Source: Heteronotia binoei
Taxonomy: Eukaryota
DNA length: 64,000 nucleotides
Direction: 5' to 3'
Assembly (NCBI RefSeq): GCF_032191835.1
Contig: NC_083227.1
Coordinates: 126,170,001 to 126,234,000 of the forward strand
Each line of letters begins with the position of its first letter. Position 1 is the stretch's first letter. Below, one piece after another: positions 5,510 through 41,318 of this stretch. The translations under genes were made by a program, and so were the position numbers. The notes below the pieces were generated by a model. That model saw nothing but the letters and a program-made list of their open reading frames with translations. It ran no database searches and was not told the origin of the DNA.

Positions 5510-5977
5510 GTAACAAGCCGTCATGCTGCCACTACATCCCTGTTGCCCCCATTCAGACTCTTCTGAACTTTTCATTTCTACTTAACCACAGTGAAATAAG
5601 TAACCTCTCCTTCTGCCATAACTCTGATCATAACAATAGCCTACTTATACTGCTTTGGATTTTAAAATGGGGAGGGGGGGTAGGGAAGTAAGGTGAAGTT
5701 GGCAGATTTAGTTTGATCCCATGCAATTCTGTGCCACAAAACTCTTTGCATTGTTGGAGCCCACAAATCATTCTTGTCTAACCAGCTATCATCATTTTGC
5801 TGATAGGAACAAATCAGAATGACTCATGAGATGCGTATTGGAGAAAAACATTGCCAGCAATTTCTAATGGGTCAGAATGTACATACACATAAAGGGCTAC
5901 ATCTGAACACTTAAAAAGCATAAAGAGAATGCATTAAAACCATTCTCTGGCAATGTTTTCTGTATGCTTCTTTCTAG

Positions 5978-7205: not shown

Positions 7206-7397
7206 ACATATGAACATATGCAGCTGCCTTATACTGAATCAGACCCTTGGTCCATCAAAGTCAGTATTGTCTTCTCAGACTGGCAGCAGCTCTCCAGGGT
7301 CTCAAGCTGAGGATTTTCACACCTACTTGCCTGGACCCTTTTTGGAGATGCCAGGGATTGAACCTGGGACCTTCTGCTTACCAAATTCCCTCCCCAA
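7206..7397 (-). mobile_element. Squam2-type SINE with deletion in the tRNA head
   Basis: Reverse complement of 3936-4147 over most of its length. Confidence 0.85.
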
Positions 7398-10310: not shown

Positions 10311-10438
10311 TAGTGTTGCCAATTCCAGGTTGGGAAATTCCTGGAGACTTGGGGATATAGCCTGTGGGGGAGCTTGATTTCTGTAGTCTGGAGATTCAAG
10401 GAGCTCTTCAAACCTCACTTGGAGGTTGGCAACCCTAC
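10311..10438. mobile_element. Short hAT-type MITE
   Basis: TAGTGTTGCCAA...TTGGCAACCCTA; related copies near 11.2-11.3, 32.2-32.4 and 61.35-61.56 kb. Confidence 0.6.
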
Positions 10439-22153: not shown

Positions 22154-22320
22154 ACCCTGTGGCACAGAGTGGTAAACTGCAGTACTGCAGTCCAAGCTCT
22201 GCTCACGACCCGAGTTCAATCCCAGTGGGCTCAAGGTTGACTCAGCCTTCCATCCTTCTGAGGTCAGTGAGTACCCAGCTTGCTGAGGGAAAAGTGTAGA
22301 TGACTGGGGACTACCTTTAC
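22154..22320 (+). mobile_element. Sauria SINE (Squam1 type), internally shortened
   Basis: gtggcacagagtggtaaactgcag...gagttcaatccc...ggttgactcagccttccatccttc, tail acctttacctttt. Confidence 0.8.
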
Positions 22321-22583
22321 CTTTTTATAAGCTTTTATGTACATGCACACTTCTTCAGATACTGGTTTCTTATCTCACTACATATACTAATGTAATTCAA
22401 TTGTCACATCTGTTGTAAACTCCTTTACTATGCTGTATGCTAATTTGCTGCATACATCACCTTCATCCAGTCTTAGCTATGTATACTGCTCAGTTACTTC
22501 TGTATCTTGACTCTAATTGGCCCTTCCTGGCATCACTCTCCTCACCCTTTACCCATATGTAATGGTTGGTGACTTGTTTCAGT

Positions 22584-22621
22584 GTATCTGAGGAAGTGTG
22601 CCTGCATACGAAAGCTTATAC
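22584..22621 (+). ncRNA. Minimal type I hammerhead ribozyme motif with intact core
   Basis: GTAT-CTGAGGA-A-[GTGTGC CT GCATAC]-GAAA-GCT-T-ATAC: stem I GUAU/AUAC, stem II closed by G:C, palindromic AAGCUU, predicted CUU cleavage after 22617. Confidence 0.65.
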
Positions 22622-22836
22622 CTAGAATAAAGCTTTGTTGGTCTTATAGGTGCCACTGGACTCTAGTTCCTGAAAGTACTGAGCCAGTCCTGGATTTCCT
22701 CTGCTTCATTGGAGCAGTAGGTGCTTCAGAAGTACCCAGAGGCATGCAAAGAGAACTCATTCAGAAACAGTGGCTTCCATCATAGGAGCATGCTTGGCTT
22801 AGAGCATCCCAATGTTTTGTTTGGCAGCACCTTCCA

Positions 22837-23115
22837 GAGACTCAGTTTGCTGCAGTGGTTAAGCCGCATGGACTCTTCTTATCTGGGAGAATGGGTTTGA
22901 TTCCTTACTCCTCCAAATGTTGATGTGAACTTGAGCCAGTCACAAATTCTTGCAGAGCTGTTCCTCTCAAGAGCAGCTTCTTTTAGAGCCCTCTCAGCTC
23001 CACCTACCTCACAGGATACCTGTTGTGGGGAGGGGAAGGGAAAGGAAAGGAGATTGTAAGCCGCTCTGAGATTCTTTTGGGTAGTAAAGGGTGGGGTATA
23101 AATCCAATCTCCTCC
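22837..23115 (+). mobile_element. Squam3-type SINE (older copy)
   Basis: Homologous to 12344-12619. Confidence 0.85.
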
Positions 23116-23406
23116 CATAACAGTCATTTTGCAGTGGTGCCCACTACCGTTTCTCAAAAGTCTGAAAGTGCCAGAAAGCTCAAAAAGTTTGGGGACCTCT
23201 CAGTGACTCTTTCCAAACAGGGGTCACCTAGATGCTTTTGGGCCCACCCAGTTTTTTGCCCCCTCCCCCCCAAAAAAACAGGGTGGTATCCTTTTGACTG
23301 GATGGTTTGATGAGAGTTTCCACCCATTTTTCAGAGGCTCAAATCCAATTCATCTCACACCTATCATAAAACTCTCTAGGATTTTAACTAACACAGAAAA
23401 TCAAAA

Positions 23407-23621
23407 GGGAAGAGGCTGCGGCTTAGTGGAGGAGTATGTGCTTTGCGTGCAGAAAGTCCTGTTTAATCCCTGGCAATTCGTTAAAAAATGACTAGGCACT
23501 AAGTAATGTGAAGTACTTCCACCTGAGACTCTGGAAAGCCGCTGCCAGTCTGAGCAGACAATACTGACCGTGAAGGACCAATGGTCTGATTCAGTATAAG
23601 GCAGCTTCATGTGTGTTCATG
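23407..23621 (+). mobile_element. Squam2-type SINE (older copy)
   Basis: Homologous to 3936-4147. Confidence 0.8.
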
Positions 23622-23848
23622 TACACAGAACTAATGTACAAAGAACTGATATACTCAGGTGAGGATATCAAGCAACTAGTCTGGGAAAGTTGCTGCCTGA
23701 GGTTTTGGAGACCAACTAGAAGGCAATACTAAACTAGTCTGACTTGATAGAAGCAGTTCTGTTTGTTCTCCTAGCACTGCCATCTACTGGATACTTGGTA
23801 ATTTTTAAATAGTGTAACTGCCATGTTTTAAGTATCCAAGACTATCAA

Positions 23849-24025
23849 GATCCAGGAGGGCAGCCATGTTGGTCTGAAGCAACACAACAAAGTTGGAGTC
23901 CGGTAGCACCTTTAAGACCAACAAAGTTTTATTCAAAATATAAACTTTTATGTGCTAAAAGCACACTTCATCAGACAAAAAAACATTGTTGGTCTTAAAG
24001 GTGCTACTGGACTCCAACTTTGTTT
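23849..24025. mobile_element. Compact Penelope-type inverted remnant
   Basis: Inverted ttgttggtcttaaaggtgcta segments; perfect 12-bp direct flank CAAGACTATCAA (23837-23848, 24026-24037); minus-strand CTGATGA box with GAAA decayed to AAAA. Confidence 0.72.
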
Positions 24026-26306
24026 CAAGACTATCAACAAATTCCAATTAAACTGATTAAAGATGAACAGACTTATACTTTCTCTCAAAATAAATCAACT
24101 TGATTAAGTACATTTGCATGATGGCTGTGTTATTTTTCTTCATTAGTATTTTAAGTACAGTGTGATTTTCAATATTAGGAATTTTATTTTCAAAAAGCCC
24201 AACAGGTCTTTGTCAACTTTTCTAGTCCCCACTCCTCAGAAAGCTTAGTAACTTACAAGCTATGACAGCACAGTTTTGTTCTTTTTGGAGGGGGGAAGCA
24301 TGTTAAGTTCCAGTCATAGGGTCAAGGGCAGGAATCTATTAGACAGAATCAAACACAGTTCTCCAATACATTTTTGGGCTTCCCAACATTAAATAAAACA
24401 GTACTGCGATGAAAGTCAGTTTTTTCCCTCTCAGTAGACAAGACACTCTAAAAAAAGAGAGGAGTTAGGAAAAGTTGAAGGCAGAAGGAAAAGAGGAAGA
24501 TCTAACATGAAATGGATTCACTCAATCAAGGAAGCCACGGCCCTCAGTTTGCAAGACCTGAGCAACACTGTTAATGACGGTTTGGAGGTCATTAATGCAT
24601 AGGGTCGCCACAAATTGGAAGAGACCTGACAGCACATACACAGTTAACCTTAGGAAAGTCAGAACACTGCTGACTTAGAAAGGGAGAATCTCTCTAACAA
24701 TGTTTAAATTATGAATTGCCTGCTTTTATACAACAAGCAACCCAATATGTGATGTCGGCAGGCATTTAAAGTAGTTTAGGTTGTTAACAGCTCTGTGACA
24801 ATGATCCACAAAGCTTCTCCATACATTTCTAGGGAACTGAGATCCCCAGCAACCCAAACCAGTATTTCTTTGGATTTTGAAGTCTTTAGATTGGCAAGTT
24901 AGGAAGACTTATTTAAACACTGGAAGCAATAACTTATTACCGTCCATTACTGACTGAAAAAGTGTCTTTAATAAATTAGCATTTAAGAGCAAATCATAAT
25001 CTTTGTTCAGAAATACAATACATGTTTTTTACAGCACAGTACACACTAGAATCCTTCATAGAAGGGAGCTGAACACCACAAATCTGTTCATTCAATGAAT
25101 AAAACATACTTGAACCCCCCACACACATACACACTCCAGATTTCCTGCTTTCAGCTATAGCAGAAGACTATTTTCACCTCTCAGATTTATGGATGGTCAA
25201 AAGTTAAAGAGACAATGCAATTAGTGGACAATGCAATTAGTTCACACAACACAGCTTAATGCATTATATGGGGAGGGGGAAAATGCTGGTCTCTTCAAAA
25301 CACAATATGAAACTCACCCAGGACAGTTTTATAATTCTAGAACTGGGAAGTATGTAGTGGCTTTCAGAGGGTCCGGACAGTCAAGTGCTGCATATTCTCC
25401 CAAGCAACATTTAGCAAGGGACACGAGTCAGAAAAGTGTCTTGTTGGACTGTGTTTCCTGAATCCAACTATGTTGCACAAGTACTCTTCATAGTGTCCCT
25501 AAATGAATTACAACCTATGGAGTCTATGGATGGGATAAAAAAATAAAATAAAGTGCCTGAAAAGAGATTGCAGAAGCCTGAAGATCCCCTCCTGACCAAC
25601 AGTCTAGTTTCATCATCCCAAACATACAAATCCCTGAACAGCCTGCAAAACCATGCCAGCCAATTATAGATCTATCACACTTTAATTCACATTTCCATTA
25701 ACAAAAAAGTTCACTCCTCAGGTTGAAACAGAATTAGCTAAAGAAGCAGATACGTGCTCATCCCCTTAATACTGATGGGGGCTAAGTTTCTTCAGAAGAG
25801 AGCCCAATAGCAGCTGGGGCTCCAGAAGAGGCTCATCAGTCTATTATAACCATCAAATTTAGGCTATAGCATTGGGGATATATAAACATTCTCTGCTCTT
25901 TTCCATCCCCTAATGATCCCACAAAACACAACAATGTTGTCACGCCAGCTATTGTCAAAAGCAGGTCAAGCTCTTCTGTAAACCCATTTGCCTTCCCTTC
26001 CCAGCTTCCAGCTACCCAAAACATCCTTCTCTCTCCTATGCCATCCTGTCCTGGCTAGCTTATACATCCAAACAACATACTGGAAGGAGAAACTGCCCTT
26101 TTTATATCAAGGTGTCCGCAGATCTCAAACCCACAGGAGTACATCCAGATTTCATGGAAGCACATGACTCTTTGGTCAATGTAAACTGTCGAAGCTGTTC
26201 AGTACTGGAACTCGGCTGTGTGATAAACTGCTTGAACTATCTGCAGAGGTGCCTCAACAACCCAGCTCTCATCTCTATGGCCAGAAGACGCCCACTTCCA
26301 AGTAGG

Positions 26307-26774
26307 TTAAACCACACCATCCTCTGCTTGGATTTCTTCATCTTCCTCCATTTCTGTTTTGATCTGGGCCACACCCAGGCGGTATAAGGTATCCCGGATC
26401 ACCACCTCACCAGGCTGGCAGCTTTGCACAATCTCATGAATCTGCCTGTTCACAATTTCACGGCTAGAGAGGAAATCCATCAGGCGATTGTAGAGGTAAT
26501 AGTGGGTTGCATTGTCAAAGGTTATAGGCCTCTGGCGGACATTATTCGTTTTGCTATCATTGATGGCTGCAATGATGGCGCTGTAGGGTTCTAATTCCCG
26601 GCAGAGGGAGAGGGAATGATGTCGGGCTGTTGGGTCACTCTGAGTGCTCTGCTCTGTTCCAGTAAAAACCACTCGGCGGGATGCAGACTTGGTGACTGGG
26701 TGCTGAATTGTATGTTCAGCACTGGTCATGTCCACATTGTAGTGCCTGTCCAGCAGTTCAGGGCAGGACACATA
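26307..26774 (-). CDS. HMGXB3: HMGXB3 exon 20 (last coding exon)
   Basis: catcag|YVSCPELLDRHYNVDM...RQRPITFDNATHYYLYNRLMDFLSSREIVNRQIHEIVQSCQPGEVVIRDTLYRLGVAQIKTE...*; recognisably the HMGXB3 C-terminus. Confidence 0.97.
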   Translation of the reverse strand, partial: YVSCPELLDRHYNVDMTSAEHTIQHPVTKSASRRVVFTGTEQSTQSDPTARHHSLSLCRELEPYSAIIAAINDSKTNNVRQRPITFDNATHYYLYNRLMDFLSSREIVNRQIHEIVQSCQPGEVVIRDTLYRLGVAQIKTEMEEDEEIQAEDGVV

Positions 26775-27633
26775 CTGATGAGAGAGAAAACAAAAGTTAT
26801 ATATTTTTTTCTTAGTTTCCTCAATCAGAACTGGCTAAATAAAAATAAATTCATAACAGAAACCAGCACAGAGCCTTGAATGCACTGGATTTGCAGCTGG
26901 CTTCAACCCCCTAAGTGTCCAAAACACTCTTCTGGTAAATAATAGAGTCTTCCGCCACAAGCCTGCTTCGGTGGGGAGGGTGGGATATAAATCCAATAAA
27001 TAAATAAATTCCATGCTTTAGTCTCCATTTATTTTAATAGAAATAGCTGATTATTGCTACTGGGAGAAACACTCAAGATAGGATGAGTTCGAGAGATGAA
27101 CGCCTGTCCTAAGCATTTAAAATTTCAGACACACTGGAACATTTTTCCTTACCACGAACAAGCGCAAGAACTAGGTGAGACCAGTAGCTCAGTGGCTACA
27201 TGCATGTTTTGTACACATACTCAGTCCCTGCTACCTCCACATAAAGGAGCTTAAATAACATGACTGGGAATGCCTAAGGCTCTGGGGAACAATGAGTCAT
27301 TAGCATTTGAAAAACGGGTGTCGTCCTTAAAAGGAGGACAGAAGACTGCAAAAGTAACCCATCACACAAGTGTACCATGACAGATAGTGCTATCTTTTTC
27401 ATTAAATTGCAAAAAAAAAACCCTAAAGTTGAACGCAGTAAGCAAAACAAGTATTTGAAAAATGGCATAGGCTGTGGCAAACACAAAACTGTGACACATG
27501 TTATCAAAAACACACACATACAACCATTGGGACCCTCCCCACTTACACCTCTCAGTAACATCTCTAGAGAGGATAGTCATCGCAAGTGCTCTCACTAGTT
27601 TTGAAAACAGTGCAACAGAGCAAGGCAACTAAC

Positions 27634-27843
27634 CCTTAAAGGTTCCATGGGGTCAGAGAAGCAACCCTGGTTTCTCCCCCACATCTGAGCAGTCAAGTCA
27701 GGATAGCAGATATCTGCACACAATGCCACAGAAGTGGCCAAGTCTACCACATAGACTGGTGGCCAGTGGCGTGAAGAGGCTAGGAGATCCACATGGTCCC
27801 GGGGACTTTCCCCTCTCACAATGTATTTTGAGCCACACACGAC
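27634..27843 (-). CDS. HMGXB3: HMGXB3 exon 19
   Basis: cccag|VVCGSKYIVRGESPRDHVDLLASSRHWPPVYVVDLATSVALCADICYPDLTAQMWGRNQGCFSDPMEPLR|gttagt, 210 nt. Confidence 0.96.
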
Positions 27844-28293
27844 CTGGGAAGAAAAAAGTTGTAGCAGGTTTGGTGCAACACACTGGAAGAAAAGGGAAGC
27901 ACCCAGGAAATAAAAAACAAACCAAGCTGAGCTGTTTCCATCCTATGCTTTTCAAATGCTAGCGTGACAAATGAACCTTGTCTGCAAACAAACATTACAC
28001 AAGAAATTTTCCAATGGTGGCAAAAAACACAGACCACTGTAGCACCACAATCTAGCAAACACTTAAAAATTTCTGTCCCGAATTACCACATATGAATGCT
28101 GACTCCTATATTGCAAGCCATGAAGAACAGCATCAGCCAATCTAGCCATGTAACATACCACATAAACCACAATTTCTACTTGCATATATTTTACACTTTA
28201 TAATGTAAATATCAAATCTGCTGAAGCATTCCATGGCTCTCATCAGTTGTCCACACCTACCATGCACTAGTAGAACTTTTAAATCAAACTCAC

Positions 28294-28410
28294 CTGGTGT
28301 GGACACACTTTGTAGATTTTTCCTCCAGTCAAATGTGAGGGGGGCTGTTTGATCTGTGTCCCATTCTGTACAAAATCATACAGAGCCAGCAGAGAAAGAC
28401 AGAGCTGCTC
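28294..28410 (-). CDS. HMGXB3: HMGXB3 exon 18
   Basis: cctag|EQLCLSLLALYDFVQNGTQIKQPPSHLTGGKIYKVCPHQ|gtgagt, 117 nt. Confidence 0.95.
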
Positions 28411-28559
28411 CTAGGAACCATCAGCATATCAACAAAGGGGGGGAAAGTTAGCCATTTGAAAATAGCTGGTTCTTCGAGAGAAGGGCAGGGATGTTAGATG
28501 CAGATATACATGAATAATAAACCTCTTCCAGATAAGCTGCAAGTATTTCAAAGTTCTGT

Positions 28560-28800
28560 GCACGAATTACCTAGAATAATTTCAAACTGGCTTTCAGTCT
28601 GGTTTTCGGAGAGAGACGGCACTAGCTACCACAGAGATCCTGAGAGAAAGATAGGGGAAGCGTGTTCCAATCCTAGATCTCTCAGTGGCTTTTGGTGCTA
28701 TTAGCCAGAACATCCTTCTGGATAGTTTTACAAGTTCGAGATTGAGGGTTCTACTTTGCTATGGTTATGCTCTTTGTCGGACAGTAGATTTCAGAAGCTT
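28560..28800 (+). mobile_element. Decayed L2 reverse-transcriptase fragment
   Basis: Translates to FQSGF(R)...LDLSVAFGAISQNILLDS, resembling L2 QSGFR / LDLSAAFDT motifs. Confidence 0.6.
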
Positions 28801-29583
28801 TTAAGAGACAGTTGTTCTCAAGGATCAATTTGATCTTCAATACTTTTAAAATATCTACATGACATAACTGACAAAGGCCATCTGGAACTACTGAGTACAA
28901 CTGTCACTTTGTTGACACCAAAGCAGTATGTCTTGAAGTTGTGTATGAGCTCTAAATTCAAACCAGTTTTTAAAAAAATACATGGAGGTGCATTCTATGG
29001 ACCAAGTAAAAGTGAAAAGATTTGTCTTGGACTTGCACTCATCCCGAAAGACGAGGTTCATAGGGGAGCTCGTAAGTGCCTGGGATCCGGCTGTGGCCCA
29101 GAACACCTTTTACCACCTCTGGCAGTTGCATCCTGTACTGGAGAACAGAAAGATCCCACTGTCATCATATCAAGAAGCGACTTTTAGATGAGACCTAGTT
29201 TAACACATTGCATGTTATGCTGACTGTGAAGATGGGTTGTGCAGAATACTATGGCTAGATTGATATCAGGCACAAGCAGGCAAAAATCATATGAAGCCTT
29301 TATCAAAGCAGTTACAATGGCTAATGTGTTTCTGAGATTAATTCAAAGTGCTTTGCAGTCTGCATCCTAAGTATCACAAGGAGCACCTGATTCCATTTTT
29401 GTAACTGAGACTGTGATCTTTACTTCTGATGGGAGGGGAAGAGATTTTCTTGTTTTTATTGTTTTGAATAAAGTTTTAAAATTTTAGATAATTCAATAAT
29501 TTTAAATTGATTACTGGCAATAAGAATTATAATTATCACTTTGAAATTCTAATACATTTGGTATTACAAAAAAGCCCTATTAC

Positions 29584-29717
29584 CTTTGAATCACCTGCAT
29601 CCCAGGGAATACTGCACTGTGTCAAGAAATTCTGTAACTCTTCCTTGCTGTAAGAACCAATCTGCTCCATTTTACAGGCTTCATCCTGAATCAGCCTTAC
29701 CAAAACACTTGCATGGC
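29584..29717 (-). CDS. HMGXB3: HMGXB3 exon 17
   Basis: ttttag|(G)HASVLVRLIQDEACKMEQIGSYSKEELQNFLTQCSIPWDAGDSK|gtaata, 134 nt. Confidence 0.94.
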
Positions 29718-30037
29718 CTAAAAAGCAAGAGATCATTTTGTTTAGCTGCTCTTAGAAGAGAATAGCAAACTTTAAAGGCTTCTAAACCCTTAAGCTAACC
29801 AACTATGTCTGTTGTCTGTTGGATAACCCTGGCAAAAATTGTTACAAGTGTGCATAGGGTTTGTCATTGGGCAACAAACGGGATGAGAAATAACATTACA
29901 ACTTTCATGTGGACTAACATAGACGCTGACAAAATTTATATTGGCCTTTTAAGATTCTAGCATACCATGGAAATACAGACATTCTAGAAACAGAGACACC
30001 AGTGACCCTCTTATAGACCAGAATTTCTACAAAATAC

Positions 30038-30257
30038 CTGTCATCATAGGTGCGTCAAAGTTCTTCTCTCTCTCTGTGTTGACGACCACAGAGCCCCTCA
30101 TCAGTGGTGGGAAAAAGGGGGCTATGATAGAGGCATCAAACTTTGTGATAGGGATGCTGGAAGGAAATGCCACTTGCTCTATCACTTCAGTCTCCATAGT
30201 AGACCAGAAATCTTCCACATTTACTTCACTAGATGCCAAGAATTCTGGCCAGGTAAA
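30038..30257 (-). CDS. HMGXB3: HMGXB3 exon 16
   Basis: gttaag|FTWPEFLASSEVNVEDFWSTMETEVIEQVAFPSSIPITKFDASIIAPFFPPLMRG...APMMT|gtattt, 220 nt. Confidence 0.95.
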
Positions 30258-30573
30258 CTTAACAATGGAAGAAGGGGGAGGGAAAAAACAGAAGTATGAA
30301 CAGTTTATAAGATTATATTTAACCAGGTATACATTCTGCTCAAACCTACACATTTAAATGGGTTCTTCTTTCCCTGCAGGTTAACAAAAATGGACCCGTT
30401 GCTGATCTGTTATGTCAGCAAACAAGATAAAGCCTCTGAAAGTCCCCCTTTCTTGTTTTCAAAGGAGTAAATAAAAATATAGCTTAACACAGCAAACAAT
30501 GTATTAGCACTAAAACCAACATTGCGAGAAAAACAATTAAAGGTGCAGCTGGATGTTATGCCTAAGATTATCT

Positions 30574-30630
30574 CCATCCATCCATCCATCCATCCATCCA
30601 TCCATCCATCCATCCATCCATCCATCCATC
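30574..30630. repeat. (CCAT)n microsatellite, about 14 units
   Basis: Directly visible; 33 nt from the HMGXB3 exon 15 donor. Confidence 0.97.
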
Positions 30631-30662
30631 ACTTCTTATATGGCTATTAAAAGGTTGTCTAC

Positions 30663-30847
30663 CTCAATGTTTTTCAGTGACAAAACATTTTCCACATTCC
30701 TCTGGGCTATATCAACTTTGGGTGCAATGCCACAGATACCACAGATCATATCATTATAGTCCCGGACAGTAAGGCATTCAAAGGCCCAATATCCATTGCA
30801 CAGCAGCTCCTCAAGTTGACTCAACTCCTCAGTGCTCAGATTTTTCT
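30663..30847 (-). CDS. HMGXB3: HMGXB3 exon 15
   Basis: caacag|(E)[43 protein letters not shown]...LKNIE|gtagac, 185 nt. Confidence 0.96.
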
Positions 30848-30952
30848 CTGTTGGGAAAAATAGAAAAAGAATCATGTAACCAAAATACCTAAAGTCACTT
30901 TCATACCCAACAACTGTGGGCTGACTAACAAGCCTGTGGCTTTGACGGATGC

Positions 30953-31536
30953 TGTCAGGAGAGAAACCACCACCACTTAACTTTTTTCCTGCTCCCTGGC
31001 CTGGAAGCCCGTGGACTGCTACCTGCCCTCTGACAGATGGGTACTAGTCAAGTTCATCTCTCAAGCCTGTTAATTAGCCCATACATTACAGCTGTAGATG
31101 TGGTCAGGGGAGAGGGCAGCCTTCTCCTGCCCAGAATATTCCTTGGAAACAGCCCTGTCATAGGTTGGGAAAGATTAGTTCATGGCCTGCTTTTTCTATA
31201 AATTATAGCCTATGATGGGTTAGTATATTCTCTTCCCTTTGCTATTTCTTGTCTTCTCACCCCATCCATGCTGCCTAGGGACTTTTGTTGTATGCTCTCG
31301 AACGCCTTTTGCCTTAGTTAAGAAAAGCCAGCATCTTTGCTGCAGAATTAAGTAAGTGAATAGCCAGATAATTTTCTTCTTTTTTGTGTACTTGAACCTC
31401 TCACCAGAATGACATATATTGCTTTTAAAATCTTTTCTTAATTTTCTTCAGTAAAGCTTTCTTTGCTCTATGGTATATGTTACTGGAGCGTTTAAGCTTG
31501 ATTGTATTACGGTACCAAGGCAGGTCACCCTTGACA
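30953..31536 (+). mobile_element. Probable solo LTR
   Basis: TGTCA...TGACA ends, TATA-like CTATAAAT near 31196, AGTAAA near 31451; flanks GATGC/AGTGC match only partly. Confidence 0.45.
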
Positions 31537-33424
31537 AGTGCCTTTAACTGGCCATTGAGCCAGTTGTGTCACTGCAGCAATTCTGAATCCCCAACCTAGA
31601 CCCTGCTGCATCAAAGTCCTGCAGAACTGCAACTGACATCAGGAGGGTAAAGGACCATTTTTGATATCCTCTCTATAATAAAAACACTGTGGGGTGGCCA
31701 AAAGCAGGTCTCCCATTAGCTGAGGGGTATGCATCAACCACTAGCCCATCTACCACCACTCAAGGTCTGTTGCATTCCATTGGCTAAGGATTCAGGCACT
31801 GCTTTGCAGAGGAGAGAAAGAAAGGCTTCCCCAGATTGATTGATGAAGGGAGGAGGCTGAGAGGGAGGAGGGAAACAGTCACAAAAAGCCTTCCCTCAAT
31901 TGGCTGAGGACTCCTCCCCTTCCTCCTCTGGGGAACCAAACAGCCAGAGAGACATAGACAAAAAGTAGCATCCCTTCCCAGCAGAACAACAACGTTTTAT
32001 TCTAGGTACAGAGAGAGAGAGAGAGGGAAAGAGAGAGAGAGAGAGATCATATGGCATCTTGTGTTTAAGATTGGGCCACTGGAGAAGCTGCCTTTGCTTT
32101 CCCCTTTGTGCCTGTTGCTAGTCAACAAACTTGGTTATGTCAGTAAAAAGCAGAGGGAGGAAGCCCTTTCAAGGCCTATTTTGGCCTTTGAGGGAGAACT
32201 CATTGGGGCCATGCCTGACTACAGGTGCCAGCTCCAGGTTGGAAAATTCCTGGAGATTTTGTAGTGGAGTCTCAAAAGCCACACTTTGGGGAGGGGAGAG
32301 GTCCCAGCTGGGGACCCATCCTCCAAAGCACTTATTTTCTCCAGGATGGGGAGAGAAATCTGTTGTTTGAAATTCAATTGTGATACCAGGAGATCTTCAG
32401 CCTCCACCTGGAAGTTTCCTATTCTAGGCCTGGCAGCACCCTCTAAGTGACTTCATGCCATCTGACCAGCATGACTTAACTAGACCTGGCTGCTTGCTCC
32501 TGTACAGCAGCAGCCCCCCTATGACAGTCACTATTAAGCTGTGCCTTGCCAGAGGCTGAGCACATTTCAGAGAGCTCTGAGAGAGCAGATAAGAAGTGCT
32601 ATAAGGGTGAGGTATGGCTTTCTAAACAGCTGGGGGAGTTGCTGAGAATTTATGAGTTTGTGTGACTATGTGACTACTGAAAATTCTGAGTTTGTGGTTG
32701 CTGGGGAACTGCTGTTTGTTTGGTTTGAGTGGGCTGAAGGTGATTGTTGCTGATTGATTAGGAGTGGCTGTGTTCCTGGGGCAGACTGAGGCCCCACCCT
32801 CTTTGCATTATTAAGCTGTGCCTTGCCAGAGGCATGAGCCTTTGGTGAGAGCTAAAGGGCTCTTGGCCTGTGGCTCTTAGCCTGGAGGCTGTGTATGGAT
32901 CAGGAACCCAGATCCCTATTTTCCTTATGTTCCCAATAAGGTAAGTAGACCCTCCAGAAGGTGAGCCACATAAACAAACAGGATTTAAAAGGGGACTGCA
33001 TATTTTAAAAAAGCTATCATGAAGGTAGAATGCCATCAGGGGGGTGGGGGCTTTCCAGTGTTTTGCACTGAGTGTCACATGTATGACTATCTGCACACAG
33101 GACAGAAGTCTTGGCTTAGGTGTGTGCAAGGAGCTCCTGGTACTCAGGGAATGAGTTTGTACCCTTGAGGCCAAGGTGACTGACTTGGAGAAGCAGAGAC
33201 AGTCAGTTAGGCACTCATAGAAGACTCTCAGGGACGTATTAGATGAGCCCCACTCTGAACGTGGCAGTCCCGTTGCTGCCAGGGAGCATGAGGGTCAAGA
33301 GGGAACAGGGCACCGTGCTGAGGATAAGGGGAATTCACCCTCAGAAGGGACCTCTTCTTCAGTTGGTGAGCGGGTATCCTTTCGCACCAAGGAACCATCC
33401 CTGGGCAGGGAGAAAGGGGGGGTC

Positions 33425-33925
33425 TTGGTAGTTGGTGATTCGATCCTTAGGCAAGTAGACAGCTGGGTGGCAAAACCATGTACTGACCATATGGTGACTT
33501 GCCTGCCTGGTGCGAAGGTAGCGGACATTACTCGTGTTGTAGATAGGCTGATAGACAGTGCTGGGGAGGAGGCAGTGTTCGTGGTGCATGTTGGCACCAA
33601 CGATGTGGGGAAATGCAGTCATGAGGTCCTGGAGGAAAAATTTAGGATGCTAGGCAGAAGACTTAAGGCCAGGACCTCCAAAGTAGCCTTCTCAGAAGTG
33701 CCACCTGTTCCACGTGCAAGTCTGGAGAGACAGGCACAAATTAGAAGTCTCAATGTGTGGATGAGACGATGGTGTAGGGAGGAAGGGTTTAAGTTTGTTA
33801 TGCACCGGGATGCTTTCTGGAACAAGCGGGAGCTGTACAAAAGAGACAGTCTTCATTTGTCCCCAGATGGAACCAAGGTCCTGGCGCTTAAAATCAAAAA
33901 GGTGGCAGAGCAGTTTTTAAACTAA
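33425..33925 (+). pseudogene. CR1 ORF1 SGNH/GDSL esterase domain (open segment)
   Basis: VVGDSIL, LPGAK, VHVGTNDV, RDSLHL motifs in one 166-codon frame. Confidence 0.88.
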
Positions 33926-35010
33926 TTCTTAGGGGAAAGCCGACAGGAGATGAAATGTCTCTGGTTCGGGAGGACTCATCGCAAAGAGATGAAGGGTTAG
34001 CTGTTACTTTTCTACCGGGTAATAGATCAGAGTTGTCCACTGAGATGGTGACAAATAGTACGGAGTGTCTGCCAAAGTTTTGAGGCAGCAGGAGGAAGGT
34101 GGCGGGCCTACCTTGCCTGGGAAATTATAGATGTTTGTATACAAATGCTAGGAGTGTTCGAAGTAAAATTGATGAGTTGGACTGTTTAGTGTTGGGGGAA
34201 AACATAGACATTGTGGGAATTTCAGAAACTTGGTAGAATGAGGAGAATCAGTGGGACACGGTGATTCCTTTATATAAGTTATATCAGAAGGATAGGGAGG
34301 GAAGGGCTGGAGGTGGGGTGGTTCTGTATGTCAGAGAGGGTATACAGTCCAGTAAGAATGAATTCAAAGAATTAGATTCCCTTCTAGAAATGCTTTGGAT
34401 CGAAATAGAGGGCCCAAAAGGAAATTTAAGTATGGGAGTTTGTTATCGCCCACCAAATCAAAAGATAGAGGACGATTATAATATGATGGAAGGATTAAAG
34501 ATAGCACCTGAACGTAAAACTGTGTCGTCATAGGTGATTTTAACTACCCGCAGATTGATTGGGTCAATATGTGTTCAGGTCGAGAGAAAGAGATTGAGTT
34601 TCCAGACGCTCTCAATGACTGTGCTATGGAGCAGATGGTCACAGAACCTACCAGAGGTGGGGCGATCCTGGATTTGGTCCTAAGTAATGCCCAAGACTTG
34701 GTGAGAGATGAAAAAGTGATCACACTGCTTGGGAGCAGTGAGCATAATGTTATTGATTTCACTATTTGTTTAAATAGGGTGCTGTCCCAAAAGACCAGCA
34801 CAACCACATTTAACTTTAAAAGGGGTAAATTCTCTGAGATGAGGAGGCATGTAAAGAGGAAACTGAAAGAAAAGGTAAATTCAGTCAAAACCCTTGGGGA
34901 AACTTGGAGGCTATTTAAAACTACAATCCTAGAAGCTCAGATAAAATATATACCACAAGTTAGGAAAGGCACAAACAAGTATAAGAAAAGGCCTGCATGG
35001 TTAACAAAGT

Positions 35011-35286
35011 AAGAAGAAGAAGATATTGGATTTATATCCCGCCCTCCACTCCGAAGAGTCTCAGAGCGGCTCACAATCTCCTTTACCTTCCTCCCCCACA
35101 ACAGACACCCTGTGAGGTGGGTGGGGCTGGAGAGGGATCTCACAGCAGCTGCCCTTTCAAGGACAACCTCTGCCAGAGCTATGGCTGACCCAAGGCCATG
35201 CTAGCAGGTGCAAGTGGAGGAGTGGGGAATCAAACCCGGTTCTCCCAGATAAGAGTCCGCACACTTAACCACTACACCAAACTGGC
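35011..35286 (-). mobile_element. Young Squam3-type SINE inserted into CR1 ORF2
   Basis: Nearly identical to 12344-12619; splits PAWLTK from VMEAVKGKK. Confidence 0.92.
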
Positions 35287-36736
35287 TTACAGTAATGGAA
35301 GCTGTAAAAGGTAAGAAGGACTCCTTTAAGTGGTGGAAAGCTAGTCCAAGTGAGATTAATAAAAGGGAACACAGGCTGTGGCAAATCAAATGCAAGACTG
35401 TGATCAGACAGGCAAAAAGGGACTATGAGGAACATATTGCAAAAAACATAAAGACCAACAATAAACATTTCTTCAAATATATTAGAAGCAGGAACCAGCC
35501 AGGGAGACAGTGGGGCCCTTGGATGACCAAGGGGTAAAAGGATTACTGAAGGAGGATAGGGAAATGGCTGAATGCATTTTTTGCCTCAGTCTTCACTGTG
35601 GAAGATGAGAAGTGTTTGCTCATTCCAGAACCACTAATTTTGGAAGGGGTGTTGAAAGACCTGAATCAAATTGAGGTGACAAGAGAGGAGGTTCTACAAC
35701 TGATAGACAAATTAAAAACTAATAAGTCACCGGATGGCATACATCCAAGAGTTCTGAAAGAACTCAAAGCTGAGCTTGTCGATCTCCTAACAAAAATCTG
35801 TAATCTTTCATTGAAATCTGCCTCTGTTCCTGAGGACTGGAAGGTAGCAAATGTCACCCTCATCTTTAAAAAGGGTTCCAGAGGAGATCTGGGAAATTAC
35901 AGGCCAGTCAGTCTGACTTCAATATCGGGAAAGTTGGTAGAAAGCATTATCAAGGATAGAATGACTAGGCACATTGATGAACACAAGTTATTGAGGAATA
36001 CTCAGCATGGGTTCTGTAAGGGAAGATCTTGCCTCACTAACCTGTTACAGTTCTTTGAGGGAGTGAACAAACATGTGGACAAAGAGGACCCAATAAATAT
36101 TGTTTACTTTGACTTCCAGAAAGCTTTTGATAAAGTTCCTCATCAAAGGCTCCTTAGTAAGCTCGAGAGTCATGGAGTAAAAGGACAGGACCTCTTGTGG
36201 ATCAAAAACTGGCTAATTAATAGGAAGCAGAGAGTGAATATAAATGGGCAGTCTTCACTATGGAGGACGGTAAGAAGTGGGGTGCCACAGGGCTCAGTAC
36301 TGGATCCCATGCTCTTTAACGTGTTCATTAATGATCTGGAGTTGGGAGTAAGCAGTGAAGTGGCCAGGTTTGCAGATGACACTAAATTGTTCAAGGTGGT
36401 GAGAACCAGAGAGGATTGTGAGGCACTCCAAAGGGATCTGTTGAGGCTGGGTGAGTGGGCATCAACGTGGCAGATGAGGTTCAATGTGCCAAGTGCAAAG
36501 TAATGCACATTGGGGCCAAGAATCCCAGCTACAAATACAAGTTGATGGGGTGTGAACTGGCAGAGACTGACCAAGAGACAGATCTTGAGGTCGTGGTAGA
36601 TAACTCACTGAAAATGTCAAGACAGTGTGCGATTGCAATAAAAAAGGCCAACGCCATGCTGGGAATTATTAGGAAGGGAATTGAAAACAAATCAGCCAGC
36701 ATCATAATGCCCCTGTATAAATCGATGGTGCAGTCT

Positions 36737-36767
<31 letters not shown>

Positions 36768-38470
36768 TGCACCTCAAAAAGGATATTATAGCACTGGAAA
36801 AAGTGCAGAAAAGGGCAACTAGAATGATTAAAGGTTTGGAACACTTTCCCTATGAAGAAAGGTTAAAACGCTTGGGGCTCTTTAGCTTGGAGAAACATCG
36901 ACTGCAAGGTGACATGATAGAGATTTACAAGATTATGCATGGGATGGAGAAAGTAGAGAAAGAAGTACTTTTTTCCCTTTCTCACAATACAAGAACTCGT
37001 GGGCATTCAATGAAATTGATGAGCAGTCAGGTTAAAATGGACAAAAGGAAGTACTTCTTCACCCAAAGGGCGATTAACATGTGGCATTCACTGCCACAGG
37101 AGGTGGTGACGGCTACAAGCATAGCCAGCTTCAAGAGGGGACTGGATAAAAATATGGAGCAGAGGTCCATCAGTGGCTATTAGCCACAGTGTATGTGTAT
37201 GTGTGTGTGTGTGTGTATGTATGTATATATGTTTGTGTGTGTGTATAAACACACACACATATTGGCCACTGTGTGACAGAGTGTTGGACTGGATGGGCCA
37301 TTGGCCTGATCCAACATGGCTTCTCTTATGTTCTTATGTTCACTGTAACATGACAGTCAGCACTTCAGAGCACTGTCTGTCAGACCCAGACTCCTACTGT
37401 GGAAGCTGACTGGGTGATTTTCAGCCTAATCAACCTCACAGGGTTGTTATGTCGATCAAAAGGGGGAAAGGAAAATTATGTAAGCGGCTTTGGTCCCCAC
37501 TGTGGTCCCCAGGTGGAGGCTGCAGGGAGTGGGGGAGGAGATGAAAAGCTAAAGTCAGAGGGGCAGATAAAGGTAGGTTGACATACGTTGCCTCCCTCTA
37601 TCTTTCCCTTCCCAGCCCCTTCAAGGCCATGACACTCACCCACAGCAAATTTCTAACACCCGTTGTATTTCTCCCCACAACGGTTATTATTACTAGTGTA
37701 TTCATATTTTAACAACTTATTTATTCAAATTTATTTTAAGGAGGCTTGAAGGTGAAAACGGCAGAAAGCTGGGCATAATTCTTAGAAACCAATAAATGAA
37801 ACTTTCTGCAGATTTCCCAACTCCATGCCTTCAGAAGAGTGCGCACAGAAGGTAGTTCCCAGAGCTAACAAGGACAGCACAACAGTGTGAACTGTGCCAT
37901 AGGCTTACCACAAAATTTCAGTGGTTCCCCAAAGGTGGTACTTTTGCCTTTTCCATGACACTCCCAACTGTGGGACATAAGGAGTCATGCAACTAAAACA
38001 AAGAATATTTAAAGCATTCTAGTCATTGTGGTTTGGAAGCCACGACTGAGCCTAAGGCTTGTTAGTACAAATCCTCTAATTTTGGAGCCTGGACCTTAAA
38101 ATAGTAGAAGGAAAAGGAGTTATTGAACCTGTGAAAGCAACTTTATACTCTGTCAGCAAATAATCCAATGACAGATCACCTTAGAGAACTCTGTGGAGCC
38201 TTATCTGCTCTGTACCTTGGGGCACTTCTAGTCACACTTGCCTGATATTGCAGCCTACAGCACTGCATGCAGCAGATATTCAGCCCTGATCTTTCAGCTG
38301 TCTCTACAGCATATCAACAGCCCCCCTTGCTAGGGTGGCCAGACCGTCCCGGTCTCCCGGGACTTTCCCGGTTCTGGCCACCAATTCCCGGCTCCCAGGC
38401 TGCCTATACCGGGACCATTACAAAGTCCCGGTATAGCCGGCGGGGAGCCGGCGCGCCACGCGTGCGGGCC

Positions 38471-38566
38471 GGGAAGGCGGGGAGTGAGGCAGCCAGCGTC
38501 CCTGCGCGTGCGCACAGCGGTGTGCGCACGCGCAGGGACGCTGGCTGCCTCACTCCCCGCCTTCCC
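38471..38566. repeat. Perfect 46-bp GC-rich hairpin with 4-nt loop
   Basis: 38471-38516 is the exact reverse complement of 38521-38566. Confidence 0.97.
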
Positions 38567-38584
38567 CGCCCGCGCGCGGGGTCC

Positions 38585-38850
38585 GGAGAGGCCGGCGCTG
38601 GTCCCTGGAGGCCTCCAGAGGCCAGCGCCGGCAGCGTGGAAAGGCCTCCGCTGGTCCCTGGAGGCCTCCAGAGGCCAGCGGAGGCTTCGTGGAGAGGCCT
38701 GCGCTGGTCCCTGGAGGCCTCCAGAGGCCAGCGGAGGCTTCGTGGAGAGGCCTGCGCTGGTCCCTGGAGGCCTCCAGAGGCCAGCGGAGGCATCGTGGAG
38801 AGGCCTGCGCTGGTCCCTGGAGGCCTCCAGAGACCAGCGCCGGCCTCTCC
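38585..38850. repeat. 53-bp GC-rich minisatellite, 5 units, each containing the palindrome CTGGAGGCCTCCAG
   Basis: Units start at 38585, 38638, 38691, 38744, 38797. Confidence 0.95.
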
Positions 38851-38943
38851 GGCCTCCGCAGCTGCCGCCAGCCCCGCCAGCAGCCCGGAGGAGAGGCCGC
38901 CACCGCCCTGGATCCAGGTAAGCCAAAAGCGGGGGGGGGGCGG

Positions 38944-39260
38944 NNNNNNNNNNNNNNNNNNNNNNNNNNNNNNNNNNNNNNNNNNNNNNNNNNNNNNNNN
39001 NNNNNNNNNNNNNNNNNNNNNNNNNNNNNNNNNNNNNNNNNNNNNNNNNNNNNNNNNNNNNNNNNNNNNNNNNNNNNNNNNNNNNNNNNNNNNNNNNNNN
39101 NNNNNNNNNNNNNNNNNNNNNNNNNNNNNNNNNNNNNNNNNNNNNNNNNNNNNNNNNNNNNNNNNNNNNNNNNNNNNNNNNNNNNNNNNNNNNNNNNNNN
39201 NNNNNNNNNNNNNNNNNNNNNNNNNNNNNNNNNNNNNNNNNNNNNNNNNNNNNNNNNNNN
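38944..39260. other. Assembly gap (317 N)
   Basis: Run of n preceded by a G-run. Confidence 1.
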
Positions 39261-39502
39261 TGGCCTGATCCAACAGGGCTTCTCTTATGTTCTTATGTGA
39301 CACAGTGTGTTGGACTGGATGGGCCACTGGCCTGATCCAACAGGGCTTCTCTTATGTTCTTATGTGACACAGTGTGTTGGACTGGATGGGCCACTGGCCT
39401 GATCCAACAGGGCTTCTCTTATGTTCTTATGTGACGCAGAGTGTTGGACTGGATGGGCCACTGGCCTGATCCAACAGGGCTTCTCTTATGTTCTTATGTG
39501 AC
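39261..39502 (+). repeat. Tandem array of 67-bp CR1 3'-terminal units (at least 3.6 copies)
   Basis: Unit tggcctgatccaacagggcttctcttatgttcttatgtgacacagtgtgttggactggatgggccac matches the last about 65 nt of the CR1 at 37.27-37.34 kb. Confidence 0.95.
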
Positions 39503-39570
39503 AATACTGACTTTGGTGGACCCAAGCACTGATTCAGTGTAAGGGAGCTTTGTGTTTGTGTCTTCTGGTG

Positions 39571-40469
39571 CAATTTTGTTCTCAGATCCTGTATTTACTT
39601 CATCAGTATATGGGATAAGGCACTTTCTCAACTGTGCTGCATAATGCAGCCTATTTATTTTGTCCTGTTTGCTCTGTTGGCTCTATCTGCGCCACCTTCA
39701 TCACTTTCGGGGTGTGGATCCCCCAGTGGGGTGGTCTCGCGACTCCCTCCGCCGGCTGTTTCTGATAGCCCTGCGCCCCCTCTTTCATTTGATATGTGTC
39801 CCGTGCGGATGCCACCCTCCTGCCGGGAGATGCCGCAAAATGAGCCCCCTTGAGGCTTATGGCGGCAGGGCTCGGGGGAAGCGAGCTAGACTGCTGTTCT
39901 TTTGAGGGGTCATAGAGTGTTTCGAGCCCGTCCCTGTGGCATCGGTCCCATCGTTGTGGGGCCCAGGGGGCCGGCGCAGCGGCACGCTGAAGCAGCCTGT
40001 CGGTCACTTCCGGGTTCCTGTCCTGCATCTCGACCTGTGACAGGCTGCTTCGGCGTGCTGCTGCGCCGGCCCCCTGGGTCCCACAACGATGGGACCGATG
40101 CCACAGGGACGGGCTCGAAACACTCTATAACCCCTCAAAAGAACAGCAGTCTAGCTCACTTCCCCCGAGCCCTGCCGCCATAAGCCTCAAGGGGGCTCAT
40201 TTTGCGGCATCTCCTGGCGGGAGGGTGGCACCCGCACGGGACACATATCAAATGAAAGAGGGGGCGCAGGGCTATCAGAAACAGCCGGCAGAGGGAGTCG
40301 CGAGACCACCCCACTGGGGGATCCACACACTGAAAGTGATGAAGGTGGCGCAGATAGAGCCAACAGAGCAAACAGGACAAAATAAATAGGCTGCATTATG
40401 CAGCACAGTTGAGAAAGTGCCTTATCCCATATACTGATGAAGTATATACAGGATTTGAGAACAAAATTG
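39571..40469. repeat. Long inverted repeat: 431-bp arms (39571-40001, 40039-40469), 37-bp spacer
   Basis: Manual alignment: 13 mismatches, no indels (about 97%). Confidence 0.97.
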
Positions 40470-40499
40470 TTTCCGGCGGTGATATTTGGGGGATTTTTG

Positions 40500-40730
40500 G
40501 GGACGTCACAGGAAGTGCTGTGAAGTCACTTCCTGTTTCCGGCAGTGGCATTTGGGGGAAATGATGTCATTTGGGGGAAGTGATGTCACAGGAAGTGATG
40601 TCACTTCCCGTTTCCGGCAGGTGACGCGGGAAAATGATGTCACAGGAAGTGGTGTCACTTCCTGTTTCCGGCGGTGGCATGACGTCACCGGAAGTGATGT
40701 CACCGGAAGTGACGTCACTTCCTGTTTCCG
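40500..40730. promoter_or_regulatory. Subterminal array of ETS (GGAAGT) and CRE (TGACGTCA) motifs
   Basis: 10 GGAAGT/ACTTCC cores, 2 full TGACGTCA, and CCGGAAGTGACGTCA at 40703-40717. Regulatory function is inferred only. Confidence 0.45.
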
Positions 40731-41186
40731 GCTTCGCACGCGCGCACCCCTACCTTCCACCACCACCCCCCAAGGTGTCCCTGGCTGGCCTTCAGACATT
40801 ATGGTCACCCTACCCCTTGCCCGCTGCCTTTCTCACCAGGCTAAACAAAAAAAAAAATCAGCCTTTTTGGAGGTCTTTTCCCTCAGCAGATTCAGCCAAG
40901 AATATTGTGAAACAGCCACAGTTTTTTAGACAAAATGTGAAGTGGAAGCTAGGGACATTTTTGATACAACATACAGTCAAAATTGCTGGGTGGGTATCTA
41001 AAAGAGGTGGAAACCCCATCGAACAGGAACATCATATTGCTCACTGTAACCGCAAGCCCAAGTTATTCGTTTTTTGAAAAAAACATAACCACCCTGCCCA
41101 CCCCATCCATAACTCTAAACACTGTTCTGATTTTAGCGGACTGATGGAAACTGATTCAAAGACAGAAGGAAGGGGAATATCAGTAC

Positions 41187-41318
41187 CAGTCTGCTCCTGC
41201 ACAGATTCCAAGATACTGCTGACAGCCACCTTAGGATCCTCGCCGAGTTTAATATGATTTCTTATGGCGAACAGAAGGTCCAGGCTCACCAAAAGTTTGT
41301 TACCTACATTAAACAAGC
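41187..41318 (-). CDS. HMGXB3: HMGXB3 exon 14
   Basis: cttcag|(G)LFNVGNKLLVSLDLLFAIRNHIKLGEDPKVAVSSILESVQEQT|gtactg, 132 nt. Confidence 0.95.

Follow-up and report, generated by a model that had tools for sequence, protein, structure and literature searches.

Positions 38331-40812 of the 64,000-nucleotide stretch of Heteronotia binoei DNA analysed here (the window) hold parts that resemble several transposon classes side by side, which raises the question of whether they form one mobile element, and which of them belong to it. A sequence-only reading had listed, in order, a hairpin, a minisatellite, a gap, CR1 tails, a Squam2 scrap, an inverted repeat and an ETS/CRE array, all of which are indeed present (Table 1), enclosed by hAT-like terminal inverted repeats (TIRs) and a perfect 8-bp target site duplication (TSD). 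The enclosure is equally real: one element copy is bounded at 38331-40812 by CCCCTTGC on both sides and by 11-bp inverted ends, and further inward no useful similarity between the two ends was found.

Table 1. Features of the element and its insertion site (positions within the window; strand cell empty where none applies).
Feature	Positions	Strand	Observation
Left TSD copy CCCCTTGC	38323-38330		Identical to 40813-40820
Left TIR TAGGGTGGCCA	38331-38341	+	10 of 11 bases match the right end
Left subterminal region, TCCCGG x5 and CCGGGA x2	38342-38455	+	Common to most family copies only up to ~38400-38420
GC-rich hairpin	38456-38581		61-nt arms, 95%; bin depth 40 (X21) to 163 (X22) vs flank ~1
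53-bp minisatellite, unit itself palindromic, 4.8+ copies	38585-38886		Depth 8-280; also in organism B contigs
GC-rich stretch before gap	38887-38943	+	Depth 3-34 over a half-filled bin
Assembly gap, 317 N	38944-39260		Real length may differ from 317
Concatemer of 67-bp 3' tail of CR1-like LINE, at least 3.6 units	39261-39499	+	Left side cut by gap
One unit of 3' tail of tRNA-derived SINE	39500-39560	+	Joined to LINE tail at GACA (39500-39503)
10-nt linker TCTTCTGGTG, SINE tail to fold-back	39561-39570	+	No repeat of the sequence beyond the other arm
Left arm, 431-nt inverted repeat, family core	39571-40001	+	Depth 750-5700
Fold-back loop, 37 nt	40002-40038	+	Crossed by reads at depth 770-2570
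Right arm, 431-nt inverted repeat	40039-40469	-	Contiguous with array in other copies and another species
Array, about 5 units GTCACTTCCYGTTTCCGGC with TGAYGTCA (ETS/CRE-like)	40470-40732		Depth 1200-1850
Right subterminal region	40733-40801	-	Terminal-bin depth about 540-670
Right TIR TAGGGTGACCA on minus strand	40802-40812	-	Reverse complement compared with left end
Right TSD copy CCCCTTGC	40813-40820		Read depth ~1 from 40816 on

The TIRs of hAT elements start with the motif YARNG, and TAGGGTGGCCA and TAGGGTGACCA, with their TAGGG... ends, conform to it, as the length of the TSD does to the superfamily. Depth from genomic reads of the same species, taken in 97-bp bins, is 0-2 over the flanks (both read orientations summed), which are single-copy, and reaches ~300-550 in the left-terminal bin; the jump coincides with the ends defined by TIRs and TSD to within one bin, and at that resolution the repetition stops at the TIRs, an agreement beyond chance. 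Because depth is about 1 in the flanks and hundreds to thousands inside a segment framed by an 8-bp TSD and TIRs, this is one real insertion, and 38331-40812 is a single insertion of a non-autonomous, non-coding hAT-type element. None of eight internal ORFs contains a Pfam domain, and no hAT transposase ORF was found in the element or among the tested long ORFs of the window; that no autonomous partner came to light there counts against the account that we favour below. In Rfam, the GC-rich palindromes gave no more than sub-threshold, miRNA-like matches that stay below the gathering scores, a generic hairpin signal; a spurious 125-aa ORF from the fold-back, used as bait against a collection of 5.8 billion proteins, gave zero matches and no other copies, and a literature search with the TIR string brought up nothing but human primer sequences. 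Other elements of the window with an 8-bp TSD have related TAGGGTTGCCA ends, such as a second element at 1141-1648 with the TSD CCTGAGAA. The target preference of hAT elements, nTnnnnAn, is weak, and CCCCTTGC departs from it with C at position 2 and G at position 7; this is a single site set against a statistical preference, and it, too, counts against the favoured account. Taken by itself, the copy is an ordinary young DNA transposon.

The sequence-only reading took the fold-back and the ETS/CRE-like array to be cargo from other transposon classes, and this we have to reject: fold-back, loop, array and both termini together form the family's conserved core. The family numbers roughly 10^3 copies, the loop is crossed by reads, and a second species (organism B) has a 515-nt contig that is colinear over 40088-40602 with 7 differences and spans the arm/array junction, which is multi-copy and shared with that species. 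The family architecture is drawn from binned depth rather than from aligned copies, 150-nt and 100-nt reads give depths that are 2-10-fold apart (most in GC-rich parts), and the depth figures for the arms depend on how the tool handles reads that fit both arms; these points weigh against the account preferred below. The two arms differ at 13 of 431 nt, and at nine of these mismatches (39809, 39821, 39911, 40059, 40158, 40215, 40290, 40329 and 40331) the read majority carries the base that restores pairing, so the palindrome is older than this copy. With 3% divergence between them, each arm has decayed by about 1.5%, most mismatches being private to this copy, and the ancestral palindrome of the family was near-perfect. 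Complementary departures from the read majority at 39739 and 40301 mark a subfamily, and the loop itself varies by a 9-nt insertion at 40036 in 24-39% of reads. The array, in which we counted TTCCGG x5, CCGGAA x2, GGAAGTGA x4, TCACTTCC x4, TGACGTCA x2 and TGATGTCA x5, is the family's right subterminal repeat region; an exact-pattern scan of metagenome contigs with its unit gave 19 loci, all of them 19-28-nt chance matches without extended similarity, and viral contigs gave no match. When every module was searched by BLAST within the 64-kb window, only the LINE and SINE tails recurred and no second family copy turned up, as expected at about one copy per Mb. Among the listed pile-ups of read begins and ends there was none at 38331, 39571 or 40812; as the true ends are thus missing from the list too, it carries no weight for internal junctions.

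The segment to the left of the fold-back behaves differently from the core. In run X22 the single-place depth falls from 683 at 38397 to 226 at 38421, 108 at 38439 and 79 at 38454, a drop of about 3-fold up to 38421 and of about 10-fold up to 38460, and the left interior as a whole lies 10-50 times below the core. The GC-rich hairpin, whose perfect 46-bp stem (38471-38516 with 38521-38566, loop GCGG) gives a DNA fold of -97 kcal/mol (z = -15), is present in tens to low hundreds of copies. It is followed by the minisatellite (core 38585-38839, 4.8 copies at 94%, with a weaker extension to 38886) and by a stretch with a G run at the gap edge. Beyond the gap, the 67-bp LINE-tail unit is repeated 3.6 times at 98% (39261-39503), and the same tail ends a LINE at 37270-37339 that carries a GDSL-esterase ORF and a reverse-transcriptase ORF and is CR1-like. 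In units 1 and 2 a T stands at the same place (39306, 39373), against an A in 93-96% of genomic reads, and this shared derived base indicates that the array grew by local duplication. The adjoining unit corresponds to the final ~60 nt of a tRNA-derived SINE found at 3940-4140, 7222-7390 and 23561; elsewhere in the genome it occurs in ~70-bp tandem arrays (joint 39560 to 39500, 9 extra letters). Only 3' tails are present, and the joint between the two is a 4-nt microhomology. A TSD around each internal module would have been expected of nested retroposons, and the sequence-only reading had named it as a sign against its own proposal. We looked for such duplications: the flanks of the fold-back, TCTTCTGGTG and TTTCCGGCGG, do not match, which leaves it without a TSD, and LINE tail and SINE tail meet at the microhomology instead, the left edge of the LINE-tail block being hidden in the gap. 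On both counts, what can be read of the interior is not made of insertions nested in one another. The hidden edge, where a TSD of nested retroposition could lie, remains a point against the account preferred here.

We consider it probable that this locus is one hAT insertion consisting of the conserved family core plus a variable filler segment, a derivative of the kind produced by gap repair in Ds elements or by template switching. A transposase made elsewhere would move the non-coding element in trans, recognising the TAGGGTGRCCA ends and, probably, the TCCCGG/TTCCGG subterminal repeats, and the 8-bp duplication would be created at integration. The core would comprise ~80 bp of left end, the near-perfect 431-bp palindrome, the TTCCGG/GGAAGTGA/TGAYGTCA array and the right end, and the segment 38420-39570, with hairpin, minisatellite, gap, LINE-tail concatemer and SINE tail, would be filler. 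This filler was most likely built before the present insertion, perhaps by interrupted gap repair or by replication template switching beside the palindrome, as suggested for maize Ds and Anolis hobo-N, would then have been carried to the present site inside the element, and may be common to at most a minor subfamily. Rubin and Levy reportedly described in 1997 that maize Ds-type elements formed by abortive gap repair.

Taken in full, the sequence-only reading would make the composite, with exactly these junctions, a discrete amplified non-autonomous family that carries pieces of LINE and SINE along to many loci. Part of this holds: the parts moved as one unit at least once, rather than as serial nested insertions, as the intact TSD, the lack of any visible internal TSD and the microhomology joint indicate, and the genome has tens to hundreds of copies of the GC-rich module. 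A uniform composite family, however, is contradicted by depth that is far from uniform, with its 3-fold and then 10-fold fall toward a left interior far below the core. Words sampled across 39474-39600 (LINE tail/SINE tail/fold-back) were absent (0/7) from five small read sets of the same species (organism A), although four of these sets (X3, X6, X7 and X8) hold 17-31% of the words of 39261-41300, which, judged by depth, should be mostly those of fold-back and array. Among the organism B contigs, none crosses from the SINE tail into the fold-back. On the other side, five of the seven words occur in an 11-million-letter run of a relative (organism C), where SINE-tail-only words could supply as many by chance in about 4%, and three of the seven in a whole-genome-size run of organism I; seven words are a weak sample for either argument. 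We regard an amplified composite as unlikely. The organism C count nevertheless fits an amplified composite subfamily better than a one-off filler, and to that extent it speaks against our favoured account.

Serial events after insertion are another alternative: a plain member of the family would have landed first, and the LINE/SINE block, perhaps with the GC-rich palindromes, would have arisen in place by retroposition or rearrangement. Both tails are hugely abundant (depth 10^4 to 10^5) with copies of each within a few kb, palindromic DNA rearranges easily in place, the gap conceals where the block starts on the left, and the junction words are missing from the small organism A runs. Yet the block consists only of 60-70-nt 3' tails joined at microhomology, without poly-A or TSD on the readable side, the GC-rich module exists in many copies and its depth continues from that of the left end, and junction words are present in organism C, all of which makes such a sequence of events quite improbable. 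That the GC-rich left interior is a captured host promoter with a first exon, amplified by the hAT element as in Pack-type capture, is more doubtful again. Its GC content of 0.74-0.79, its CpG observed/expected ratio of 0.5-1.0 and CAG|GTAAGC at 38915-38923, which by its letters may resemble a splice donor, are compatible with this, and multicopy Pack-TIRs tend toward GC-rich DNA (PMC8277862); but an ATG-led exon is absent, as is any protein or Pfam match, and the segment is made of palindromes and a minisatellite rather than of gene-like DNA. Wrong scaffolding of two loci or element copies across the 317-N gap, which lies in GC-rich, palindromic and tandem DNA that assembles badly, is barely credible, because the same 8 bp stand directly beside matching inverted ends (~1.5e-5 by chance at fixed positions) and both flanks are single-copy. 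The matching TSD on the outer flanks supports the scaffold join, as had been claimed from the sequence, a point of use to annotators.

Under the reading of a conserved core with variable filler, this copy illustrates how a hAT derivative is built, with a variable segment beside a long palindrome and a microhomology joint, and it shows that a fold-back and an ETS/CRE-like array can look foreign and yet be a family's own parts. In the FoSTeST model, replication forks are proposed to stall at element DNA that is repetitive or palindromic, which would favour switching (PMC8277862). One might extend this to the present family and suppose that the 431-bp palindrome is a standing hotspot of fork stalling and template switching in ~10^3 copies, where the adjoining segment repeatedly captures GC-rich or CpG-island DNA and retroposon-tail concatemers. 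We hold this to be rather a long shot. If true, this vertebrate would have a 'Pack-hAT' capture system that is active and high in copy number, with CpG-rich ETS/CRE promoter-like arrays and hairpin-RNA templates scattered through the genome; transposon-mediated sequence capture in multicopy form has been found only rarely in animals (PMC8277862).

Among known systems, Foldback-type elements (Drosophila FB, Galileo) share long inverted repeats, internal tandem repeats and a strong hairpin potential with the present family, but their long inverted repeats are the termini, whereas here the palindrome is internal and the element ends in short hAT TIRs with an 8-bp TSD. For multicopy Pack-TIRs, e.g., Pack-hAT-N8_XT in frog and Ssk-FB4 in Drosophila, the FoSTeST model (Tan et al. 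2021, PMC8277862) has the TIR element gain foreign DNA when the template is switched at microhomology, and transpose with it afterwards, much as is proposed here. They are defined, however, by captured non-TE (genic) DNA, for which no parent is shown here, and that survey found very few multicopy cases (4 in all). Maize Ac/Ds (Ds-del, Ds1, Ds2; PMC3260210) also belongs to the hAT superfamily and has an 8-bp TSD, 11-bp TIRs, short subterminal repeats and, in Ds, a heterogeneous non-coding interior with filler joined at microhomologies; it is a plant family of unrelated sequence, and its subterminal repeats are bound by transposase, whereas binding to TCCCGG/TTCCGG is only presumed here. The sequence-only reading had suggested an undescribed chimeric family, but in Anolis carolinensis hobo_AC and hobo-N1 to hobo-N15 form non-autonomous hAT families of 1.3-3.4 kb whose ends are conserved while their interiors vary greatly, and in which filler with CR1, SINE, Penelope and Chapaev fragments was amplified with the element (Novick et al. 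2011, PMC3014272). The present family differs from them in its long near-perfect internal palindrome, its ETS/CRE-like array and a retroposon filler that consists only of 3'-tail concatemers, and the likeness to hobo_AC and its relatives is one of architecture. It shares with them the plan of a squamate hAT element with conserved ends and retroposon filler in its interior; composite hAT elements of this kind are already described in lizards, and the insertion at 38331-40812 is best read as another example.

The sequence-only reading had described a composite hAT-type insertion at 38331-40812, and its target-site duplication (TSD), terminal inverted repeats (TIRs), hairpin, minisatellite, gap, retroposon tails, inverted repeat and array were all found by direct read and repeat scans (see table). 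The two TIRs agree at 10 of their 11 positions and are not usefully similar further inward. The DNA fold of the hairpin reaches -97 kcal/mol (z = -15). Because the identical 8 bp adjoin matching inverted ends on both outer sides (chance probability about 1.5e-5 for fixed positions) and both outer flanks are single-copy by read depth, the data support one insertion event and thereby the scaffold join, as had been proposed; this is indirect evidence of continuity and covers the join only, not the length or the modules hidden in the gap. No reading frame is affected by the gap.

Features of the element and of related repeats in the window, with read depth in runs X21-X23 (summed over both read orientations, per module)
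Feature	Position	Strand	Description	Depth
Flanks				0-2
TSD CCCCTTGC	38323-38330 and 40813-40820		direct read of region	
Left TIR TAGGGTGGCCA	38331-38341		directly inside left TSD	
Left-terminal bin				about 300-550
Hairpin	38471-38516 / 38521-38566		perfect 46-bp stem, loop GCGG	40-160
Minisatellite	after hairpin		53-bp unit, itself palindromic, 4.8 copies at 94% (repeat scan)	8-280
Stretch before gap				3-34
Assembly gap	38944-39260		317 N	
LINE-tail array	right of gap		67-bp unit, 3.6 copies at 98% (repeat scan)	37,000-92,000
Mixed bin	39458-39554		LINE-tail end + SINE tail	20,000-32,000
SINE scrap	39500-39560		61 nt, after LINE-tail array	
Inverted repeat	follows SINE scrap		431-nt arms, 13 mismatches, 37-nt loop	arms 750-5,700; bin holding loop 770-2,570
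Arm mismatches with pairing base in read majority	39809, 39821, 39911, 40059, 40158, 40215, 40290, 40329, 40331			
Array	last module		rich in TTCCGG, GGAAGTGA/TCACTTCC and TGAYGTCA	1,200-1,850
Right TIR TAGGGTGACCA	40802-40812	other	directly inside right TSD	
Right-terminal bin				540-670
CR1-like LINE	about 33400-37339	+	GDSL-esterase ORF 33425-33925, reverse-transcriptase ORF 35598-36503	
hAT MITE	1141-1648		508 bp, TAGGGTTGCCAA ends, perfect 8-bp TSD CCTGAGAA	
One end, same family as MITE	448-458	-		
Further TAGGGTTGCCA / TAGGGTCGCCA termini	6746; 10427-10437; 15182; 24600	+; -; +; +		

Reads of one sample labelled as this species, from three raw whole-genome runs (X21-X23; between about 1.1 and 1.9 thousand million letters taken per run, flank depth about 0.6-1.2), were aligned at 90% identity or more, alongside a small contig set (X2) of a second species, organism B. 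Repetition begins and ends at the TIR/TSD-defined ends, within one 97-bp bin, and the two ends are similarly abundant once the terminal bins are corrected for the flank bases they include. The family core has on the order of 10^3 copies, a figure that leaves out older copies (by the identity cut-off), in which reads fitting both arms may be counted either way, and which comes from 150-nt and 100-nt libraries differing up to 10-fold in depth in GC-rich parts.

The fold-back (the inverted repeat with its loop) and the ETS/CRE-like array had been taken for cargo; they are instead the core of this hAT family. Read depth across the loop is close to that of the arms, and 24-39% of the loop-spanning reads carry a 9-nt insertion variant at 40036, so the palindrome exists with its centre in very many copies. 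In organism B, a 515-nt contig matches 40088-40602 colinearly with 7 differences and spans the arm/array junction. No TSD of the fold-back was found beside either arm. At 9 or more of the 13 arm mismatches the majority of genomic reads have the pairing-restoring base, which indicates a family ancestor whose 431-bp palindrome was near-perfect. In the 3% divergence between the arms, each arm thus accounts for about 1.5% of private decay, a level suggesting that the copy is fairly young. The CpG observed/expected ratio, 0.6-1.0 inside the element versus 0.16-0.36 in the flanks, agrees with a young age. Complementary departures from the read majority at 39739 and 40301 mark a subfamily. Within a region at about 800, depth in X22 collapses locally to about 14 at 40329-40331 (observed across 40320-40335), where two changes in the right arm (CACACACTG versus the left arm's complement CACACCCCG) are private to this copy, and many reads start at 40332. 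About 90 reads, in X21 only, skip 413 nt (39802-40216) roughly symmetrically about the palindrome centre, a pattern that looks like either a subfamily derived by deletion or an artefact caused by the long hairpin in that library.

The segment between the left end and the fold-back (about 38420-39570) is variable. Single-place depth in X22 falls from 683 (38397) through 226 (38421) and 108 (38439) to 79 (38454), hence in most copies the match to the left side of this element ends after 70-90 bp. Next comes a GC-rich module, which is present in organism B too and recurs from tens up to a few hundred times. It is repeated rather than unique DNA and is probably a subfamily marker.

The retroposon labels given to the next pieces appear reasonable by match to LINE and SINE copies in the window. 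The 67-bp unit is a LINE 3' tail, 93-94% identical to the end (37270-37339) of a LINE whose upstream ORFs match GDSL esterase and reverse transcriptase, an esterase ORF1 being a trait of the CR1 clade; a (TG)n microsatellite (37190-37260) lies just 5' of its conserved tail of about 70 nt. The SINE scrap aligns with the last 60 nt or so of a tRNA-derived SINE at 3940-4140, 7222-7390 and 23561. A tRNA-Pro(GGG)-like ARAGORN call at 3940-4012 is the head of this SINE, not a tRNA gene. Both retroposons are represented in the element by 3' tails only, joined at GACA, letters common to both sources. LINE-tail units 1 and 2 share a T (39306, 39373) where 93-96% of genomic reads have A, and the array therefore grew by local duplication, not by separate insertions. 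Tandem arrays of the SINE-tail unit, about 70 bp, are seen elsewhere in the genome (about 1,500 X21 reads) and in organism B (one contig). Their joint runs from 39560 to 39500 plus 9 extra letters such as ACTGGAGTA, so the filler could simply have copied a genomic feature. Taken with the LINE-tail array, they suggest that concatemers of retroposon tails recur in these genomes much as satellites do.

Depth is uninformative on the retroposon junctions, where any signal is drowned by LINE and SINE reads in the tens of thousands. Seven 31-letter words were sampled from 39474-39600, where about two thirds of words cross a junction. They were found at 5/7 in a run of a relative (organism C, 11 million letters), 3/7 in a genome-size run of organism I and 2/7 each in sequence sets X1 and X2, and at 0/7 in the same-species runs (organism A) X3, X6, X7, X8 and X9. 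Of all words in 39261-41300, a longer stretch, X9 contained 11% and the other four same-species runs 17-31%. Five of seven from SINE-tail-only words is unlikely (about 4%), in a thin sample of seven words. On our reading, the junctions lie outside the bulk family of this species and may characterise a subfamily commoner in a relative.

With an intact TSD and none seen internally, the composite most likely predates the present insertion and moved here as one unit. This part of the sequence-only reading stands, but a uniform composite family is not supported, given the falling depth and the absence of the sampled junction words from the same-species runs. Interrupted gap repair or replication template switching would produce several of the traits seen: ends and a 3' core that are conserved, a variable segment immediately next to a long palindrome, duplications both inverted and in tandem, and a microhomology joint. 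Such a mechanism is established for P elements and Ac/Ds. It has also been proposed for Pack-TIRs (PMC8277862).

No coding capacity was found in the element, which thus depends on a transposase made elsewhere; no hAT transposase was found among the long ORFs tested in the window. TIR-pattern matches number 10 in the window against 2.1 expected, and the ends at 10437 and 15182, with at least 22 nt in common (TAGGGTTGCCAACCTCCAAGTG), belong to one family. Subterminal repeats (TTCCGG at the right end, TCCCGG at the left) resemble the short repeats that transposase binds near the ends of Ac and other hAT elements, and are putative binding repeats of this kind, instead of or besides ETS/CRE sites.

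The element had been thought to be possibly of an undescribed family, but its kind is known in lizards: Novick et al. (PMC3014272) described fifteen hobo families from Anolis, non-autonomous and 1.3-3.4 kb long, with similar ends and very different interiors. Compared with these families, the present element is distinguished by a long perfect palindrome in its interior, an ETS/CRE-like array and a filler made of retroposon tails only.
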